Below, one piece after another: positions 9,190 to 63,896 of a stretch of DNA of 64,000 nucleotides. The position numbers and the translations under genes are program-made. The notes below the pieces were generated by a model, which searched no databases, had not been told where the DNA came from, and was given only the letters and a program-made list of their open reading frames with translations. Location of the stretch: the sequence record OZ196285.1; one strand, written 5' to 3'. Every line of letters starts with the position of its first letter. Position 1 is the stretch's first letter.

Positions 9190-9707
9190 TGAATTCTACT
9201 GAGACGGAGATGGTTAATTTCTGGCTTAAAGATTTCGAACGGTCGACTTATCTGTATCGTGACTTGTGGTATGGTATTGCTACACGCAATCGATATGGGG
9301 ATGCGTCAGTCAAGCGACTTGACAGTGAACTGCCGTTCTGTGATGTGATTGCGCAACTCGTTAAATCTGAGGCGCGTATTCGTATCAGCGTCAAAGGTAC
9401 ACTTACAAATCAGTGGCGTCGTGCATATGGCATTACACTAGCTGAACAATGTGGTTACGTTGCACCGCCTGCTGAATCAAAAGGCGAAGACGAGGTAGAA
9501 CAGATTGAAATTGACGGTGACGCGCCAATTGCACCTGCTGAGTACGATGTTCTAATCGAGAGTGCGCGTGAATGTAAGCGTGCTAAACATGCACTACTGA
9601 ATCTTACAAAGATCGGTGACCCGATCACTAAGAGTCAGCGAACTGAAATCAACAATCTAGTTATCGATTGTAAAATGCAACTGCTCGAAGACGAGCTGAA
9701 CAAATAG
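9189..9707 (+). CDS. hypothetical protein, paralogue of lipoprotein 24395..25117
   Basis: ELPFCDVIAQLVK, ECKRAKHALLN, LVIDCKMQLLEDEL shared. Confidence 0.7.
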   Translation: MNSTETEMVNFWLKDFERSTYLYRDLWYGIATRNRYGDASVKRLDSELPFCDVIAQLVKSEARIRISVKGTLTNQWRRAYGITLAEQCGYVAPPAESKGEDEVEQIEIDGDAPIAPAEYDVLIESARECKRAKHALLNLTKIGDPITKSQRTEINNLVIDCKMQLLEDELNK

Positions 9708-47488: not shown

Positions 47489-50410
47489 TTAATTAAACAG
47501 TTTACTGTATATTTTTTTGTACCACGGAGTTTCAAGTCGTTCAACTTTTTCATTAAGCTCCTTGATTGATTCTACTAACAAGCCAATCATGTTTCCGTAA
47601 GCTACAGATTTGATGCTATCGGGGTCGTTAGCGTCAACGTGTACCGCTTCAGGCAGAACTTTCTCAACTTCTTGAGCAATCACACCCGTTTCACGTCTCG
47701 TCTCGCTCTCGCTCATAGAACGCTTCTTATCGTACGTGTAGCCACTAAGCTGTTTGATCTTCTCTAGTGGATTTTCGATGCGCTCGATGTTGCTTTTCAG
47801 GCGAATATCAGAGTAAGCAGTTACGTTGCCAGTTGCAGTAAAGTGTCCTGCATCATCGAACGTAAATCGAGTTGTCGAACCGTCACGAACATACCAGTTA
47901 CCGATGTCACTATTCAAGTCAGTGTACATGTGGGAGCCATTACAGAAGAACTCGACATCATCACTTGAACCGAAACGAAGAATGTCATTATCTGCTAAGT
48001 CAATCGCAGTGCGAACACTCAACGTACCGTTCACCGTCATACTACCAGTTATCGTACCGCCAGTTAGCGATAAGTATCCCGCACCGTTAATAGGTGCGAA
48101 TCGTGCATCAGCTTCAGCTTCTGTGTAGTAACGACCATCATGTGTATGCGAATCGTTAGCAACTGCAACAGTGATCGAAGCGTTCGCTGAACCATCGAAC
48201 GAGACTGAACCACTAGCATCACCTGCTAAACTGATTGTTCTTGCTGTTGCAAGCTTCGATGCGCTTGATGCGTTGCCAATGAACGACGCTGCTGTTACCG
48301 ATCCACGAAATTCCCAGTTGTTTGAGTTGTATTTGTTTCTAGCCGTCCAGTTATCATCAGAACCTGCTCGGTTAAACAGTGTGATGTAGTCTGAGCCAGA
48401 GCCAGAGCCAGTCGGAGTACCGTCACCGTTGTACTCAAGACCACCACCATGAGTTGAAGACTGACCCACATAAATTCGACCAGTACCTTGCGACCCACCC
48501 ATTGCTTGAATATTAGCCACGCCCGCATCGTCACAAATCACATTTAGTGTTGATGATGTGCCTGCATCGATAGTCATACTACCCGTCAGCGATCCACCCG
48601 TCAGCGGTAAGTATCCCGCACCATTAATAGGTGCGAATCGTGCATTAGCTTCTGCTTCTGTGTAGTAACGACCATCATGTGTATGCGAATCGTTAGCAAC
48701 TGCAACAGTCAAAGTCTTGTTCGCTGAACCATCAATTGAAACTGACCCACTAGCATCACCTGCTAAACTGATTGTTCTTGCTGTCGCCCATTTGCTTGCC
48801 GTCGTTGCGTTACCAGTCAATGCACCACTGAATTTTGTTGCAAAAACAGTCCCAGACGATCCTTCAAACTGAACACCAGTATGACTATACATTAAGCCAT
48901 TAACGTCAACAGTCATCGGGTATTTACCGCTGAACGTCGTTGTGATATCAACTCGATCTGCTAATGCTGCATGAGTTGCTTCGTTCACATCGACTGTGAT
49001 ACTCGCGTTAGCTGAACCGTCCCATGATACTGAGCCAGTTGCATCACCAGTAAGACTTAATGTTCTTGCAGTTGTCCATTTATCAGCATTCGGGTGATAG
49101 TTGTCCATGAAAATACGCTGAGATGTTGCGTCGGACGTTGTATTACTCGTATTGTTTTTATACGCATAATGTAGTTTATCAATGTTGCTAGTATCCGTCC
49201 ATAATGAATGTCTGAACTTAGACCCCCCGTTATGACCCCACTGAATCCAGTTGATGAAATCATTACTAGGTGCCCCAGAAACATTAGATGCCGACCCGGT
49301 TCTAAATTCGTCAGTTTGCGCGTTCCAGTCTGCGTTTAACGGGTCGATTCTAGTATGTAAGTGACTATCGTCTGCAACTACGACATTGATACTTGCATTA
49401 GTTGATCCGTCAATCGAAACTGAACCACTAGCATCACCAGTAAGACTCAACGTTCTTGCAGTAGCCCATCGACTTGATGTTGAAGCATTACCACTTAATG
49501 CGCCGTATACCGTATTAATGTACGCACTACTAAACCTCCAAGAAGATGTACCCAAAACACTGCCACCAGAAGTGCCAGATTTATAGGGAAGCAAACCGGA
49601 TGCAGGTGTACAAATATAAGTATTTGCATTAGTCTTACCACGAATTTGATAATAAGACCCAGATGGGCTTAATGTATCACCCCGAGCATATCTAGTATCA
49701 TGTGTATGGCTATCATTTGCAACTACAGTTGTAATCGTAGTAGTTTTATTCCCAGTGCCATCCACGCTCATTGATGCCGAACCCGTAACATCGCCCGTTA
49801 ATGTAGTTGTTAATGTTCTCGCAGTCGTCCATTTATCAGCATTCGGGTGATAGTTGTCCGCAAACACGCGTTGCGTGCCACTTGCGTAGATGTTACCACC
49901 AACGACAATATGTAACGGGTGCGACGTTGAACTCGTGTCTTCGAAAAACAAGGCTTGACCCGACGTATTCGGCAGATTACCATCAGTTATTTCGTGACGA
50001 ATTCTCGCGTTCTGTGTTGAGTCGGATACGAAATTAATCGTTGCATCTATAGCTGTACTAGTCGATGTAAGCGACAAGAATGGAGAATTCCCGTATGCTT
50101 CAATTCCGTATTCAAGAACACGCAATTTGCTCCCTTTCAAGTCAAGAACGTTGCTTGAAGATGCATCGAAACGAGCGTCGTAATCAGACGCGCCGCCTGA
50201 GATATGAAAGTCGATGTATCTACCGACTTCCATAACCCCGTTTGTTCCTATGACTGGAATCATTTCAGTATCTGGCGTTCCATCAGTCCCGAAAAGACCG
50301 CCAGTCGCAACTACAGCACCGTTTAGCGTATTCAAGATCACATCGTTTAAAGACGTAACCCCTGTTACGTCTATACTACCGTAAACCGTAGTAGGGCCTA
50401 ATTTAGCCAT
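47489..50410 (-). CDS. tail fibre with C-terminal S74 chaperone
   Basis: Five copies of same module; near-identical C-terminus to 43606..47418; TATAAATA 50444-50451. Confidence 0.9.
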   Translation of the reverse strand: MAKLGPTTVYGSIDVTGVTSLNDVILNTLNGAVVATGGLFGTDGTPDTEMIPVIGTNGVMEVGRYIDFHISGGASDYDARFDASSSNVLDLKGSKLRVLEYGIEAYGNSPFLSLTSTSTAIDATINFVSDSTQNARIRHEITDGNLPNTSGQALFFEDTSSTSHPLHIVVGGNIYASGTQRVFADNYHPNADKWTTARTLTTTLTGDVTGSASMSVDGTGNKTTTITTVVANDSHTHDTRYARGDTLSPSGSYYQIRGKTNANTYICTPASGLLPYKSGTSGGSVLGTSSWRFSSAYINTVYGALSGNASTSSRWATARTLSLTGDASGSVSIDGSTNASINVVVADDSHLHTRIDPLNADWNAQTDEFRTGSASNVSGAPSNDFINWIQWGHNGGSKFRHSLWTDTSNIDKLHYAYKNNTSNTTSDATSQRIFMDNYHPNADKWTTARTLSLTGDATGSVSWDGSANASITVDVNEATHAALADRVDITTTFSGKYPMTVDVNGLMYSHTGVQFEGSSGTVFATKFSGALTGNATTASKWATARTISLAGDASGSVSIDGSANKTLTVAVANDSHTHDGRYYTEAEANARFAPINGAGYLPLTGGSLTGSMTIDAGTSSTLNVICDDAGVANIQAMGGSQGTGRIYVGQSSTHGGGLEYNGDGTPTGSGSGSDYITLFNRAGSDDNWTARNKYNSNNWEFRGSVTAASFIGNASSASKLATARTISLAGDASGSVSFDGSANASITVAVANDSHTHDGRYYTEAEADARFAPINGAGYLSLTGGTITGSMTVNGTLSVRTAIDLADNDILRFGSSDDVEFFCNGSHMYTDLNSDIGNWYVRDGSTTRFTFDDAGHFTATGNVTAYSDIRLKSNIERIENPLEKIKQLSGYTYDKKRSMSESETRRETGVIAQEVEKVLPEAVHVDANDPDSIKSVAYGNMIGLLVESIKELNEKVERLETPWYKKIYSKLFN

Positions 50411-55295: not shown

Positions 55296-55826
55296 TTAGC
55301 GTCCTTTAGTTTTTTTATATTTCGCTTTCTTATTCTTTCGATTAATCTTGCGAACTTCTTTTCGTTTAGCGATTTTATCAGCTCTTCGCACTGCATCGTA
55401 ATCAGCAGCACAAGACGCTGCAAACGCATCAGGCTTGAATACAGGCTCCTGACCTACATAACCCAAGATCGTGCCCTTAGCTTCGTTATACGCAATGCTA
55501 GACTTATGTTTCGGGTCAGGATTGATATCGACGTGAACTTCAAAGCCACGAGGACCGCACATTGGCTTAACGCGCAACGCACATTCACCTGCTTTGTAGA
55601 CTTCATTCATTAGACGACTGCGAATACCGTCAGTCGCGTTCATGTATGCAGGTTCAGTTTCAACCATCTTGAAGACTTGAGCACCTTTACTGCCTTCCAA
55701 GTGAATTATGATTACAGTCGCATAACTGATTAAATCACTCTTTCGCTTACTGTCACATCCGACATAAATCGTGCTGCTCGGGTGACTATTGCATATCGCT
55801 GTTTCTATTGCTTCCCAATCAAACAT
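55296..55826 (-). CDS. RNase H-like YkuK (DUF458) family protein
   Basis: IYVGCDS, RLMNEV, EVHVDIN, FKPDAFAASCAAD. Confidence 0.8.
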   Translation of the reverse strand: MFDWEAIETAICNSHPSSTIYVGCDSKRKSDLISYATVIIIHLEGSKGAQVFKMVETEPAYMNATDGIRSRLMNEVYKAGECALRVKPMCGPRGFEVHVDINPDPKHKSSIAYNEAKGTILGYVGQEPVFKPDAFAASCAADYDAVRRADKIAKRKEVRKINRKNKKAKYKKTKGR

Positions 55827-55870
55827 TGTTCACCTCACAAAAAAGGCGGCATGAAGCCGCCCCATTCTAG

Positions 55871-57319
55871 TTATACTGCGTACCGGTCGATACCAACAGT
55901 CTTCATCATGATCTTCACTGGCTCAAGCTCGCCATCAAGTAAAGAAGTCAGGATAGATGGACTACAACCCGACACAAGTGCCGTACCTGCCTCACCCGTT
56001 TTCACTGGTACGTTGTCTAGACGACCGCGAATGTTCCAGAACGCTAGTTGCGGCATTTCGTAGCCCGCTGCTGCGTATTGAGCTTTGATAGCATCAAAGT
56101 TTGTTTCTGTGCGGCTTGGCCAACCACCACCGCATTTCGCAGTGTTGAATTCCATGTCAGACATGATCAACATCTTCGTAGGCATTTCAGATTGTGGCAA
56201 GTTTGCACGCTGCGCACGCTCCAATAGCACTTCGAAACACTTCTGAATATCAGTGCTCATGTTCTCACCAGAACGACGCATGTTAGCAAGACGCGTTGAC
56301 AGTGTATCACCAACAAGCTTGTGGAAATGTGGATCGCCTGAGAACGAAATGAACTGATCTTTGAAGATACCTTCGTTACGTTCAGCTACGTAGACACCAA
56401 GAGACATCGCTACGTCCATACAAGTTGTAACAGTGCCCTGTGAATAGCAGCTACCTTGTTCTGAGTTAATCGCACAATTCATTGAGCCAGACACATCAAC
56501 AACAGGGATGATGCGCTCGTCAGACCCTTCCATGTAATTCGGAAGTGCTTTCCATTGCTGATCTGCTACACGTGAATCGCCCATTCGTACGCTGCGAACA
56601 ACGTCGTAAGGGAAGACTGCACCTGCATTGATCTTAGCTTCGCCTTTCTCAAGCTTGTTGATGTACTCACCGTAGTTCTCAGCCGCGTTACGACCGAATG
56701 CTTTCTGATAACGCGCAGACGCTACAGATGGCAACTTACCGAAGTCGATCTCGTTCCAGTTCTGTGAACACATTTTCTGTTCAACAGTGTCAGACAGCGT
56801 AGAAATGACCTTACGCCATTGCTTCGATGTCACGCCAAGCGCCTTGATAGTGCGCTTAAACACGATACCGTTTTTACTCTTCTCACGAGGGAACCACTTC
56901 GCAGCCAGTGCGTTTTTGCCGTTCACGATTGCATTTGCCCATAGAGCAATTGCATCAGACTCAAGAGGAGTACCGAACGCAGTCACTAAGTCATCGAAAC
57001 GACCTAATTCTGGCACCTTGTGCATTACAGCACGTGCAACGTCAGGGTTTTTCGCGATAAGTTCAGCGAAAATGCGACGGAAAGTACCGCGCTCACCTGC
57101 ACCACCGCGCACGTCGCGAGACCATAGCAAGATACGTGTTGCTAGTTCAGGGTTTTCACCGTATGCGCGATTGAACGCATGTACTGAATCTTTGTTACCG
57201 CGCATTGCTGCTACAGTAAAGAACAAGTTCAGACACTCGTTACCCGAAGTGCTGTGTGTAATTGCACCGTTTGCTGTACGTGCGTCGTTTGTGCTCATTG
57301 CGTTCATAAATGCTGACAT
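55871..57319 (-). CDS. TROVE/Ro60-like vWA protein (DUF2828)
   Basis: TANGA...CLNLFF, RDVRGGAGER, GRFDD, LAAKWFPRE, DVSGSM MIDAS, IMSDMEF; start 57319 with AGAGG RBS. Confidence 0.85.
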   Translation of the reverse strand: MSAFMNAMSTNDARTANGAITHSTSGNECLNLFFTVAAMRGNKDSVHAFNRAYGENPELATRILLWSRDVRGGAGERGTFRRIFAELIAKNPDVARAVMHKVPELGRFDDLVTAFGTPLESDAIALWANAIVNGKNALAAKWFPREKSKNGIVFKRTIKALGVTSKQWRKVISTLSDTVEQKMCSQNWNEIDFGKLPSVASARYQKAFGRNAAENYGEYINKLEKGEAKINAGAVFPYDVVRSVRMGDSRVADQQWKALPNYMEGSDERIIPVVDVSGSMNCAINSEQGSCYSQGTVTTCMDVAMSLGVYVAERNEGIFKDQFISFSGDPHFHKLVGDTLSTRLANMRRSGENMSTDIQKCFEVLLERAQRANLPQSEMPTKMLIMSDMEFNTAKCGGGWPSRTETNFDAIKAQYAAAGYEMPQLAFWNIRGRLDNVPVKTGEAGTALVSGCSPSILTSLLDGELEPVKIMMKTVGIDRYAV

Positions 57320-57395
57320 TGTGTATTTCCTCTTAAATAATATGCTGTAAAATGTCTTATGCGTTGTATTATACACACGTTTTTACGAGTGTAAA
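57315..57395 (-). promoter_or_regulatory. sigma70 promoter and structured leader of TROVE-like gene
   Basis: TTTACA 57395-57390, 16 bp, TG-TATAAT 57373-57368; leader AGACATT-TTACAGCA...AGAGG...AATGTC pairs over the start codon. Confidence 0.7.
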
Positions 57396-58730: not shown

Positions 58731-59063
58731 CTATCTCCGTGTAAAAATTGAGCCTAACTGACTATACTTGTTGCTGTGTAGCAACATTTGTTTCATTCGA
58801 GCGAGTGCAACTGAATTGCTCGTCACTAGAACGATAGTTTTTGGAAAGTTACCGTGGTCGATAGCATAACTTAAAATATCATAACCTTCACCATCGTAAG
58901 TTCCCAAGTCGTTGTCCATGAACAGAGTGATGTCAGTCAAGTTCGTGAACTTAACGTATTTCATCCCATCTTCGAACGTTCGAATCGTGAGTTTTTCGTC
59001 ATCGAGAACGTGATCAGCAGTCATCTTGTTGATATCACGCAAATCATCGATTAGCACGTACAT
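58731..59063 (-). CDS. cyclic-phosphate-processing receiver-like domain protein
   Basis: LIDDLRD...RTFEDG...MDNDLG...EGYDIL. Confidence 0.65.
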   Translation of the reverse strand: MYVLIDDLRDINKMTADHVLDDEKLTIRTFEDGMKYVKFTNLTDITLFMDNDLGTYDGEGYDILSYAIDHGNFPKTIVLVTSNSVALARMKQMLLHSNKYSQLGSIFTRR

Positions 59064-60965: not shown

Positions 60966-61028
60966 GATTTATTCCTCTTTTGTTTTACTCAGCATCGCAC
61001 ATTACGACAGTTTTGTAAACCACAAAAA

Positions 61029-61053
61029 CAAAAAAGCCCCAATTAAGGGGCTT
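61029..61053 (-). terminator. terminator of tRNA operon
   Basis: AAGCCCC-TTAATT-GGGGCTT plus T run on minus strand. Confidence 0.8.
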
Positions 61054-61068
61054 ATTCGTGCAATAATC

Positions 61069-61260
61069 AGACATTCGTGAACAGTTTTAAAGTCTTTCGC
61101 ATAAATCACATTTGACTTTCATGTTTAACGATACATGAATCCCTAACGACGAATCGTCAGTCGTGCCTTCGAGCGTATTGCTTTAAATCACCGAGAAAGC
61201 GGCTATGCGTTGCTCTATTCTTTTAAGTAAGTTTTGTTAGTTGGTTGCAGTACAATGTCT
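61069..61260 (-). ncRNA. structured ncRNA A (Y-RNA-like candidate)
   Basis: Closing stem AGACATT/AATGTCT, GTACTGCAA motif; 45/58 ungapped identity with ncRNA B at 3' end. Confidence 0.7.
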
Positions 61261-61270
61261 TTTGCAAAAT

Positions 61271-62561: not shown

Positions 62562-62704
62562 AAAGACGATATTTCTCATTTAATCTGCACACGGGCTAGA
62601 CACCATATTTTAATGGTCTGAGTGAAGAACCTCTGCACAACAATCCCGATCTAATTGCGTTATGTGGTGACTGTCACGAGGAATCGTATCTTCAAATTAG
62701 TATC

Positions 62705-62913
62705 AGGCAATCGCGAAATGTTTTATCGTCTTTTGCATAAATCGCTATTGACTATCTTGTGTATTCTGTACAAGAACATATCACATTTTCGCAAGTGAGG
62801 CTATCATATCATCACTGATATGCACGTCTTGTAATGCTTGAAGTGACACGTTTCCGCTCACCCGCACCAAGAGCCATCTTTGAGTTAGAAAGATTAGTTG
62901 CAGTACATTGCCT
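62705..62913 (-). ncRNA. structured ncRNA B (Y-RNA-like candidate)
   Basis: Closing stem AGGCAAT/ATTGCCT with compensatory changes relative to A; GTACTGCAA motif. Confidence 0.7.
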
Positions 62914-62956
62914 AGCGCACGTTTTAGCCGAAGCAAACGTGAACTCTAATTATGTG

Positions 62957-63499: not shown

Positions 63500-63504
63500 G
63501 TTAC

Positions 63505-63614
63505 TGAGTGTCGTTTATACCGCGTCTCCAAGACCTGAGCTACCAACTCAGCGTGAGATTCGAACTCACAACGTTTCTTGTATCGAAAGAATTTAAAATT
63601 GCTGTAAACACTCA
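63505..63614 (-). ncRNA. structured ncRNA C with circularly permuted tRNA module (YrlA-like architecture)
   Basis: Closing stem TGAGTGT/ACACTCA, TTACAGCAA motif, anticodon-like arm, T-arm GTGAG-TTCGAAT-CTCAC, closed acceptor-like hairpin. Confidence 0.7.
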
Positions 63615-63622
63615 ATGGTATC

Positions 63623-63697: not shown

Positions 63698-63707
63698 ATT
63701 GTTTGTC

Positions 63708-63856
63708 AAGACATCTTACACGACGGCGTAAGTGAACGTTCTAATGGTTAGTTCAGAATCCACGTCATAATATTGATGCTATATTCGCGCCACTATCTGC
63801 TGATAGATATGTTATGCATCATCTATGCAGACTCTTCTTGCGCTGTAAATTGCCTT
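63708..63856 (-). ncRNA. structured ncRNA D (same family)
   Basis: AAGGCAAT-TTACAGC 5' arm pairs with TGTAA-G-ATGTCTT 3' arm. Confidence 0.55.
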
Positions 63857-63896
63857 CTTATGATATGAGACTGTCACTTCTCAAATCACGACAAAT

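Follow-up and report, generated by a model that had tools for sequence, protein, structure and literature searches.

Ro60 proteins and the Y RNAs they bind are conserved from bacteria to humans, and the way in which protein and RNA levels are balanced against each other is not well understood. In the conserved stem of Y RNA it is mostly the 5' strand that Ro60 touches, for Rsr a short 5' box has been proposed (PMC4201824), and phiRo60 of Thermus phage phiLo binds two Y-like RNAs, Yrl1 and Yrl2, encoded upstream of its own gene (PMC12135203). TROVE proteins in some phages are mentioned in passing in a survey of jumbo phages (PMC7824862). Here we analyzed a stretch of 64,000 nucleotides (nt) of the KVP40-like Vibrio phage F86 (OZ196285.1), hereafter the window, in which the window coordinate equals the record coordinate minus 124000. 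It encodes a Ro60-like protein with DUF2828 and DUF7788 domains, and the leader of this gene carries a stem-and-box element, overlapping the ribosome-binding site (RBS), that is shared with four non-coding RNAs (ncRNAs A to D) of the phage tRNA cluster. The reading we favor, and to which we give about an even chance, is that the leader belongs, in reduced and cis-acting form, to a Y-RNA-like family with a CAGCAA box that partners the Ro60-like protein, and that the protein limits its own translation there. The Ro60–Y RNA particle and the mimicry operator are both already known kinds of system, and the reading proposed here would combine them. Our literature searches returned nothing on DUF2828 in phages or on CAGCAA-box RNAs, and they brought up no Y-like element on the RBS or mRNA of a Ro gene.

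Autoregulation by mimicry is familiar from the E. coli thrS operator, from ribosomal proteins L1, S8 and S15, and from gp43 and RegA of phage T4. Like these operators, the F86 leader holds a copy of the determinant of the presumed main RNA ligand at the ribosome-binding site, and ligand competition is predicted to set the protein level, but this ligand would be a family of Y-like RNAs in place of a tRNA or rRNA. A second parallel is the coat protein–replicase operator of phages MS2 and PP7, a short and weak start-codon hairpin at which bound protein is needed for an effective block. The F86 leader likewise forms a weak hairpin containing the start codon, and protein binding to it is predicted; unlike in MS2 and PP7, a 30-nt loop holds the Shine-Dalgarno (SD) sequence, the element abuts the SD outside the KVP40 lineage, and protein and RNA are unrelated to the coat protein system. 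T4 also encodes the stable RNAs C and D (species 1 and 2), of unknown function, at the end of its tRNA cluster. In general description, these resemble ncRNAs A to D as stable-RNA genes in or ending a T4-type tRNA cluster; to our knowledge, T4 has no DUF2828 gene.

The comparison is closest with Ro60/Rsr and its Y RNAs, namely YrlA, Yrn1 and the phage-encoded Yrl RNAs. Both systems combine a ring-type HEAT-repeat and von Willebrand factor type A (vWA) fold with several small RNAs that are encoded beside the gene and carry a terminal 5'–3' stem as well as a short, conserved 5'-strand box. Moreover, ncRNA C and some RNAs of two distant DUF2828 loci, L034 and L061, contain a tRNA-like T-arm and D-arm in the layout of YrlA (PMC4201824). 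The differences are that the F86 protein belongs to DUF2828/DUF7788 and has no Pfam TROVE match, that the box here is C(A/C)GCAA as opposed to the GNCGAAN0-1G or CGAA of the Rsr box (PMC4201824), and that the RNAs of KVP40-like phages are encoded within the tRNA cluster, at a distance of kilobases from the gene. By these measures the system falls outside the TROVE Pfam family, outside YrlA as defined by its 5' box, and outside any Rfam family.

At the sequence level, the 482-amino-acid protein matched DUF7788 (E = 1.4e-43) and DUF2828 (E = 1.8e-27) and nothing else in Pfam at E ≤ 0.01; the TROVE domain profile (PF05731) gave no match at that threshold, and a profile search of the PDB reached the TROVE proteins 9l5y and 9kop only at an insignificant E = 0.13. 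Matches to armadillo-repeat designs in the PDB sequence searches were discarded as spurious. We then compared structures, using an AlphaFold model built on 34 homologues of 46–77% identity (predicted local distance difference test 81.4, predicted template modeling score 0.79). The four best Foldseek matches in the PDB were all Ro60 or Rsr over the full length: Xenopus Ro60 (2i91 and 1yvr), a cryo-electron microscopy complex of Ro60 (9nep) and Deinococcus Rsr (2nvo), with E-values of 1.8e-7 to 1.1e-6 and template modeling scores of 0.47–0.60, and they were followed by isolated vWA domains only, at E > 0.03. The DxSxS motif of the vWA domain, of the metal ion-dependent adhesion site type (D275-S277-S279), is invariant across the 34 homologues. 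On the model, the protein is therefore most accurately described as having a Ro60-like fold, with ring-type HEAT/alpha-helical repeats plus a vWA domain, outside the recognized TROVE family; a preliminary description of this DNA, made from its letters alone, had called the gene TROVE-like, which fits the fold and not the sequence.

The leader is compact. A strong sigma-70-type promoter, the stem strand GACATT, the box TTACAGCA, the SD and the sequence AATGTC over the ATG follow one another on the minus strand, and AATGTC and GACATT, the two strands of the terminal stem P1, are exact reverse complements. In the register of the family the leader reads AGACAT-ttta-CAGCAT, that is an arm starting with AG, a 4-nt spacer and the box. 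The element overlaps the ribosome-binding site: its P1 loop contains the SD, and its P1 3' strand includes the AUG. Judging from the spacing of the promoter, transcription is predicted to start 2–4 nt before AGACATT. A second promoter reading, with the TTTACA of the box as the −35 hexamer, found no acceptable −10 hexamer 16–18 nt away and was rejected. We recovered in place every element listed in the preliminary description, together with the two identities it had pointed out: AGACATT is common to the leader and the 5' arm of ncRNA A (61260-61254), and the TTACAGC of the leader (57350-57344, minus strand) matches ncRNA C (63607-63601) and ncRNA D (63848-63842). Within this single genome the pattern is not significant, because both heptamers occur at chance frequency in the window (AGACATT, 10 observed and 14 expected; TTACAGC, 9 observed and 8.7 expected) and the hairpin is no better than its shuffles. 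It becomes significant by comparison with related phages.

AGTGTCT in codons 28–30 (57229-57235, minus strand, about +120) could pair with the leader AGACATT through seven pairs including one G-U; the pairing is possible in F86, VH7D and D525, and KVP40 lacks the A for the seventh pair. It codes for the E-C-L residues around the invariant Cys29, and we judged this long-range partner to be incidental. The only other site in the 64 kb within one mismatch of the motif is GACACTTTACTGCAA at 47833-47847 (minus strand), inside a tail-fiber gene; it has no stem partner nearby and probably arose by chance.

KVP40 and some 50 other schizo-T4-like Vibrio phages share about 76% identity with the F86 region. 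We aligned the promoter–leader region of 14 KVP40-like phages, which differ at about 24% of nucleotides, and found a small set of invariant blocks: the −35 and −10 hexamers, GACATT, ACAGCA, the GG of the SD, and AATGTCAG. All 12 columns of GACATT and ACAGCA are invariant, as opposed to 5 of the 33 other leader columns (15%), and GACATT, ACAGCA and AATGTC are conserved as strongly as the promoter hexamers. Variation is found in the two bases between GACATT and ACAGCA (TT, AT or AA), in the rest of the leader and in the promoter spacer. The stem-and-box module proposed in the preliminary description is thus shared, but its core is not TTACAGC, as the two bases before ACAGCA vary; across the family the conserved core is C(A/C)GCAA beside a stem starting with AG. 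In addition, we trained a weight matrix on the 5' motifs of the ncRNAs alone and scored 25,000–43,000 positions per locus in the loci of 16 relatives. In 14 of the 16, the leader was the best untrained site, directly behind the ncRNA sites (rank 1–4), and in most loci a gap separated it from the next background match; untrained sites scored above the leader in 1.081.O and D483.

A natural replacement of the leader comes from a homing endonuclease gene inserted in opposite orientation in D483 (locus L003, 10547-11137, plus strand of the locus) and VH1_2019 (locus L091, 7354-7956, minus strand). In both phages the cassette took the place of the entire intergenic region along with the promoter and the first codons, so that the protein starts with MTSLF instead of MSAF. 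Promoter and GACATT are gone, yet GGAGCTTACAGCAATG is retained: the new leader reads GGAG-CTTACAGCA-ATG, with the box between SD and ATG. By a rough estimate, the chance of finding ACAGCAA in a 45-nt leader is about 0.004. That two different phage backbones carry this same cassette suggests that the conserved leader region serves as a homing site.

A side feature of the same alignment concerns the promoter spacer (57371-57390, minus strand; columns 48-67 of alignment A4), which forms an imperfect inverted repeat in F86 and in 13 relatives. Its inner bases vary and mostly remain complementary (ACACGGGTT..AATCCGTGT as compared with ACACTCGT..ACGTGTGT), with two pairs changed on both sides; this covariation score was reached by 24 of 500 shuffles, which makes the support weak. 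The repeat could be an operator, or an RNA hairpin at the end of read-through transcripts.

Table 1 Features of the F86 window around the Ro60-like gene and in the tRNA cluster.
Feature	Coordinates	Strand	Basis	Remarks
RNaseH-like DUF458 protein	55296-55826	-		just downstream of the Ro-like gene
Terminator-like (intrinsic) hairpin and T-run	55843..55863	-	terminator scan	directly past the stop codon of the DUF2828 gene
Ro60-like protein gene, 482 amino acids	55871..57319	-	Pfam and PHROGs	DUF2828 + DUF7788; phrog_850 'RNA-binding protein'
P1 3' strand AATGTC	57315..57320	-		position -1, ATG (57319-57317) and first two bases of codon 2
Shine-Dalgarno AAGAGG	57329..57334	-	read from sequence; GG invariant in relatives	within the 30-nt loop closed by P1
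Box TTACAGCA	57343..57350	-		conserved core ACAGCA at 57348-57343, the family C(A/C)GCAA box
P1 5' strand GACATT	57351..57356	-	invariant in 14 phages	AGACATT at 57357-57351; same as 5' arm of ncRNA A
Sigma-70-type (T4 early-like) promoter	57368..57395	-	11/12 consensus match	TTTACA (57395-57390), 16 nt, TATAAT (57373-57368); A-rich tract before
cREC_REC protein (cyclic-phosphate-processing receiver domain)	58731-59063	-	E = 6.6e-15	between tRNA cluster and Ro-like gene
ncRNA A terminator	61053-61034	-	terminator scan	
ncRNA A	61059..61267	-		last of the tRNA cluster; outer stem; P1 AGACATT (61260-61254):AATGTCT (61075-61069); box GTACTGCAA (GT-ACTGCAA)
3' module of ncRNA A	61070-61135	-		about 60 nt
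3' module of ncRNA B	62700-62765	-		about 60 nt
ncRNA B	62704..62915	-		paralogue of A; P1 AGGCAAT:ATTGCCT; box GTACTGCAA (GT-ACTGCAA)
ncRNA C	63503..63616	-	single-sequence fold and consensus structure	YrlA-like; P1 GAGTGT:ACACTC; box TTACAGCAA (TT-ACAGCAA)
ncRNA D	63707..63857	-		P1 imperfect; box TTACAGCGC (TT-ACAGCGC)

The four ncRNAs are located within the tRNA cluster or at its end, 3.7–6.5 kb upstream of the DUF2828 gene; in F86 only the leader element is adjacent to the gene. Each ncRNA opens with a stem strand followed by the box (Table 1). In the consensus structure of ncRNA A (RNAalifold, 12 phages), P1 is invariant and a second helix, P2, is stacked on it and covaries (TGAGA:TCTCG in some phages, TGTGA:TCACG in others). 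ncRNA B differs from A at two P1 positions, both of which are compensated, and the two share a 3' module that is 77% identical in F86, is conserved across the family as AGTCAA..GATTTATG..AAAGAC..TAAAAC..TTC and holds the covarying P2. Past its box, ncRNA C continues into a V-like hairpin, a T-arm of the GGTTCGAATCC type and a D-arm with a AGTTGGTA loop, both arms with compensatory changes; this tRNA-like domain is found in ncRNA C only and is absent from A, B, D and the leader. The compensatory changes among A, B and C and the covariation in P2 and in the T- and D-arms show that P1 is a real helix in the ncRNAs. Among the 16 loci, ncRNA A is present in 15 and as an A-like variant in 1.081.O, B and C occur in most, and D is restricted to F86 and the D483/D525 group. 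A search of Rfam 15 with ncRNAs A to D and the leader returned no family at gathering score or at E ≤ 10, and the canonical YrlA box GNCGAAN0-1G is absent from all five, which have AC(A/T)GC(A/G) instead. In the deposited annotation, short 'hypothetical proteins' of 30–70 amino acids cover ncRNA A with its terminator (61002-61109, minus strand), tRNA-Met, and ncRNAs B and D; the short plus-strand coding sequences concerned in the tRNA cluster are VPHF86_0291, 0293-0295 and 0297. They are probably miscalls on genes for structured RNAs.

The same RNA design accompanies DUF2828 genes far beyond KVP40-like phages. Elements built as an AG-initiated stem, 3–4 nt, C(A/C)GCAA and a closing stem strand followed by CTG occur beside DUF2828 genes in very diverse phage contigs and contigs of metagenome-assembled genomes (MAGs), either just past the stop codon or as arrays just upstream, and a covariance model of ncRNA C found matches adjoining DUF2828 genes in distant contigs. 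In L034, four Y-like RNAs lie upstream, each with P1, T(T)ACAGCAA or TCCAGCAA, T- and D-arms and the returning P1 strand, and the leader itself reads AGTTTGC / TTACAGCAC / 25 nt / GCAAACT, directly after which come GAAAGGAGG, 7 nt and the ATG. L061 has five Y-like RNAs upstream, two of them minis of about 55 nt without the tRNA-like domain. At 9358-9485 (plus strand) of L061, the Rfam tRNA model matches with 40 bits over the boundary between two adjacent Y-like RNAs, combining the D-arm of one with the T-arm of the next, which illustrates the permuted tRNA-like content of such arrays. Homologues with motif-free leaders carry the same RNAs past the stop codon, usually two in tandem. Using a strict definition (a 7-nt arm, 1–3 nt, CAGCAA and a complementary arm within 330 nt), we counted 2.17 elements per kb in the 400 nt past the DUF2828 stop, compared with 0.10 per kb elsewhere in sense and 0.07 in antisense, a 20- to 30-fold enrichment, and 31 of 54 loci had at least one element there. 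Rfam gave no family match for elements of six distant loci. The genes beside DUF2828 are unrelated among loci (UvdE, HSP20, TM2, DUF6378 and unknowns), so that DUF2828 is the sole constant protein companion of the RNA family.

Two broader scans were set aside. A loose genome-wide search for a stem plus CAGCA had a high background (266 sense and 218 antisense matches) and was replaced by the stricter, position-specific and controlled tests, and an exact-pattern scan of IMG/VR with GACATTNTACAGCAA returned at least 118 scattered single matches, which look like background for so large a collection and were not used.

Elements also recur at the ribosome-binding site itself. A set of 51 distinct leaders of homologues at 44–50% identity showed no motif enrichment and no start-codon stems, L034 being the exception; by itself this null would have spoken against the whole idea and refuted it, but the sample proved to come mainly from lineages with RNAs downstream of the gene. 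A second homologue set, seeded with the L034 protein, brought in lineages whose leaders hold mini-elements, e.g., AGAATT-ttaa-CAGCAA ... AATTCT-G-AAGGAG, AGATTT-ataa-CAGCAA ... AAATCT-G-AAAGGA and AGATTC-agtt-CCGCAA ... GAATCT-G-GAG. Three of these loci (L217, L223 and L230) have a sigma-70-type promoter just upstream, and in others (L221, L231, L237 and L245) a full-size RNA with T- and D-arms ends 2–3 nt before the SD. By a strict count, 15 of the 74 unique leaders that are not KVP40-like have a mini-element ending at the RBS, as do 13 of 1423 control open reading frame (ORF) starts of the same contigs (odds ratio 27.6, Fisher p = 1.4e-13); one of the 15, in L245, is a chance match inside the full-size RNA. 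The preliminary description had suggested looking for the motif upstream of DUF2828 genes in other phages, and that search was positive in many lineages. It was positive also in a third set, of homologues at 30–46% identity on MAG contigs assigned to many phyla, where tandem arrays lie upstream and the last element abuts the SD in eight loci (L294, L297, L298, L300, L303, L322, L325 and L332). The P1 arms of the leaders differ among lineages while the pairing is kept, in elements not aligned column by column with the KVP40-like one; outside the KVP40 group, the 3' end of P1 lies mostly 0–3 nt from the SD. In L219 and L281, about 40–60 nt before the start codon, a promoter of perfect geometry, TTGACA-17-TATAAC, overlaps the P1 5' strand and spacer (AGATTTATAACAGCAA), and a transcript from it would lack the P1 5' strand. 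Either this promoter is fortuitous or the element would act on read-through transcripts only.

How could such an element work? We infer that the DUF2828 protein binds the box, represses its own translation and is titrated by the ncRNAs. The protein would recognize the terminal stem P1 and the adjoining box on the 5' strand, much as Ro60 does for the Y RNA stem's 5' strand. In its own mRNA, the SD is enclosed in the P1 loop of this site and the AUG forms part of the P1 3' strand, and bound protein would stabilize the weak helix and block the 30S subunit, so that free protein represses its own translation. The abundant ncRNAs of the tRNA cluster would compete for the protein, thereby coupling protein output to RNA supply. 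The common geometry of the family (AG arm, 4-nt spacer and box) and the position directly 5' of the gene suggest that the leader is better described as a reduced family member in the ancestral position than as an independent mimic. Special to the KVP40 lineage are the shift of the P1 3' strand onto the start codon (AATGTC, −1 to +5) and the placement of the SD in a 30-nt loop.

Several observations weigh against this autoregulatory reading. The leader hairpin is weak, with a minimum free energy of −3.6 kcal/mol and z = +0.31 against shuffled sequences. All six GACATT:AATGTC pairs are invariant in the KVP40 group and so gain no covariation support there, and both the ATG and codon 2 place further constraints on the P1 3' strand. 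The pair probability of P1 in the isolated leader is about 0.9 in F86, KVP40 and D525, where nothing competes for pairing, and 0.23 in 1.081.O. Masking of the AUG by the hairpin is accordingly the weakest part of the preliminary description: the complementarity is invariant, but it is thermodynamically weak, confined to the KVP40 lineage and without covariation, and the broader comparative pattern is the stronger argument. The leader further lacks P2 and the 3' module of ncRNAs A and B, as well as the TAC:GTA extension of other family members. Finally, about half of the homologues carry their RNAs downstream and have no leader element, and the L061 leader is motif-free despite its upstream array, so that leader-based autoregulation would not be universal among DUF2828 genes.

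An alternative that we consider possible, though on the doubtful side, is linkage or assembly without repression: the leader would be the last member of a Y-like family in its ancestral position, co-transcribed for joint production of protein and RNA and serving to load the nascent protein in cis or yielding an RNA derived from the 5' untranslated region, and its contact with the RBS would reflect genome compaction. Full-size Y-like RNA arrays precede the gene in many lineages with the leader element as the last of the array, and canonical rsr and phage Ro60 genes also adjoin Y RNA genes (PMC4201824, PMC12135203). It also speaks for linkage, and further against autoregulation, that Y-like RNAs of L034 lie 8–16 nt before the SDs of unrelated ORFs, and that in compact phage genomes an RNA gene abutting the next SD could come from co-transcription alone. 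On the other hand, many lineages that differ in P1 sequence keep P1 within 0–3 nt of the SD, a tighter spacing than that before the unrelated L034 ORFs. The KVP40-like element, moreover, is invariant even though it could not be released without destroying the SD and AUG; this, together with its own promoter 2–4 nt upstream and the distance of the RNA genes in the tRNA cluster, argues for a cis function on the mRNA. A shared processing or stability signal seems unlikely to us; here a nuclease, or some other factor from host or phage, would read the stem and box to mature the ncRNAs from the transcript of the tRNA cluster, and in the leader the signal would set the half-life or 5' end of the mRNA. 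Such a signal would suit the need to excise ncRNAs from polycistronic tRNA transcripts, the conserved CTG or CAG in which every element ends past P1, and the position of the leader element, which begins only a few nt from the predicted 5' end. But a site for a generic host nuclease is not expected to track a single phage gene, DUF2828 is the only gene constantly linked to the RNAs across unrelated contexts, and an invariant ACAGCA would be superfluous in a simple stabilizing 5' hairpin.

Chance, or a decaying remnant in which the 5' end of ncRNA A was duplicated into the leader and its CAT is fortuitously complementary to the ATG, is compatible with the heptamer frequencies and hairpin stability in F86 and with the lack of covariation in the KVP40 group. 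We regard it as very improbable: it is already disfavored by conservation, with 12 of 12 invariant columns as opposed to 15% in the flanks over about 24% divergence, and it would leave unexplained the motif kept in the replaced leaders of the homing-endonuclease variants and the analogous elements in unrelated lineages. A DNA-level element, either a site for a transcription factor or, on the other strand, a middle promoter resembling the MotA-box type, has in our view hardly any probability. The reverse complement TTGCTGTA agrees in 7 of 8 bases with TTGCTTTA, which we take to be the MotA box of T4 middle promoters, and the family encodes an AsiA homologue, which makes MotA-type promoters plausible in these phages. 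Yet the −10-like hexamer lies about 17 nt away, not 11–13 nt, and the promoter would drive antisense transcription; we rejected the MotA reading on this spacing and orientation. The strong strand bias of the elements also stands against any DNA-level reading, as does the presence of the same box inside structured RNAs with covarying stems, including in phages unrelated to T4.

With its own promoter and a terminator-like hairpin right past the stop codon, the F86 DUF2828 gene looks like a monocistronic unit. Upstream of it are small ORFs of unknown function, one with a cyclic-phosphate-processing receiver domain, followed by the cluster of 13 tRNA genes at 61.2–64 kb on the same strand. Together with the DUF458 gene on its other side (Table 1), the cREC gene gives F86 a neighborhood of RNA-repair type, a further likeness to Ro60–Y RNA systems; this neighborhood is not common to distant DUF2828 loci.

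Taken more broadly, and with somewhat less than even confidence, we propose that DUF2828 proteins together with CAGCAA-box RNAs make up an extensive branch of Ro60–Y RNA systems, undescribed to date, in many unrelated phages of most major bacterial phyla, in which the RBS mini-element would be a feedback operator matching the protein to the supply of Y-like RNA, and which in KVP40-like phages may be tied to tRNA surveillance or repair during infection. If this is true, it would define an RNA determinant, a stem plus a CAGCAA box, for a protein family without known function (DUF2828/DUF7788, phrog_850), and it would give a functional role to many intergenic stretches that are now unannotated or mis-annotated, both within the tRNA clusters of phages and beside DUF2828 genes. 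The compact RNA–protein pair could serve as a translational switch, and the system would offer a simple model, testable in E. coli or Vibrio natriegens, of how Ro proteins and Y RNAs are kept in balance.

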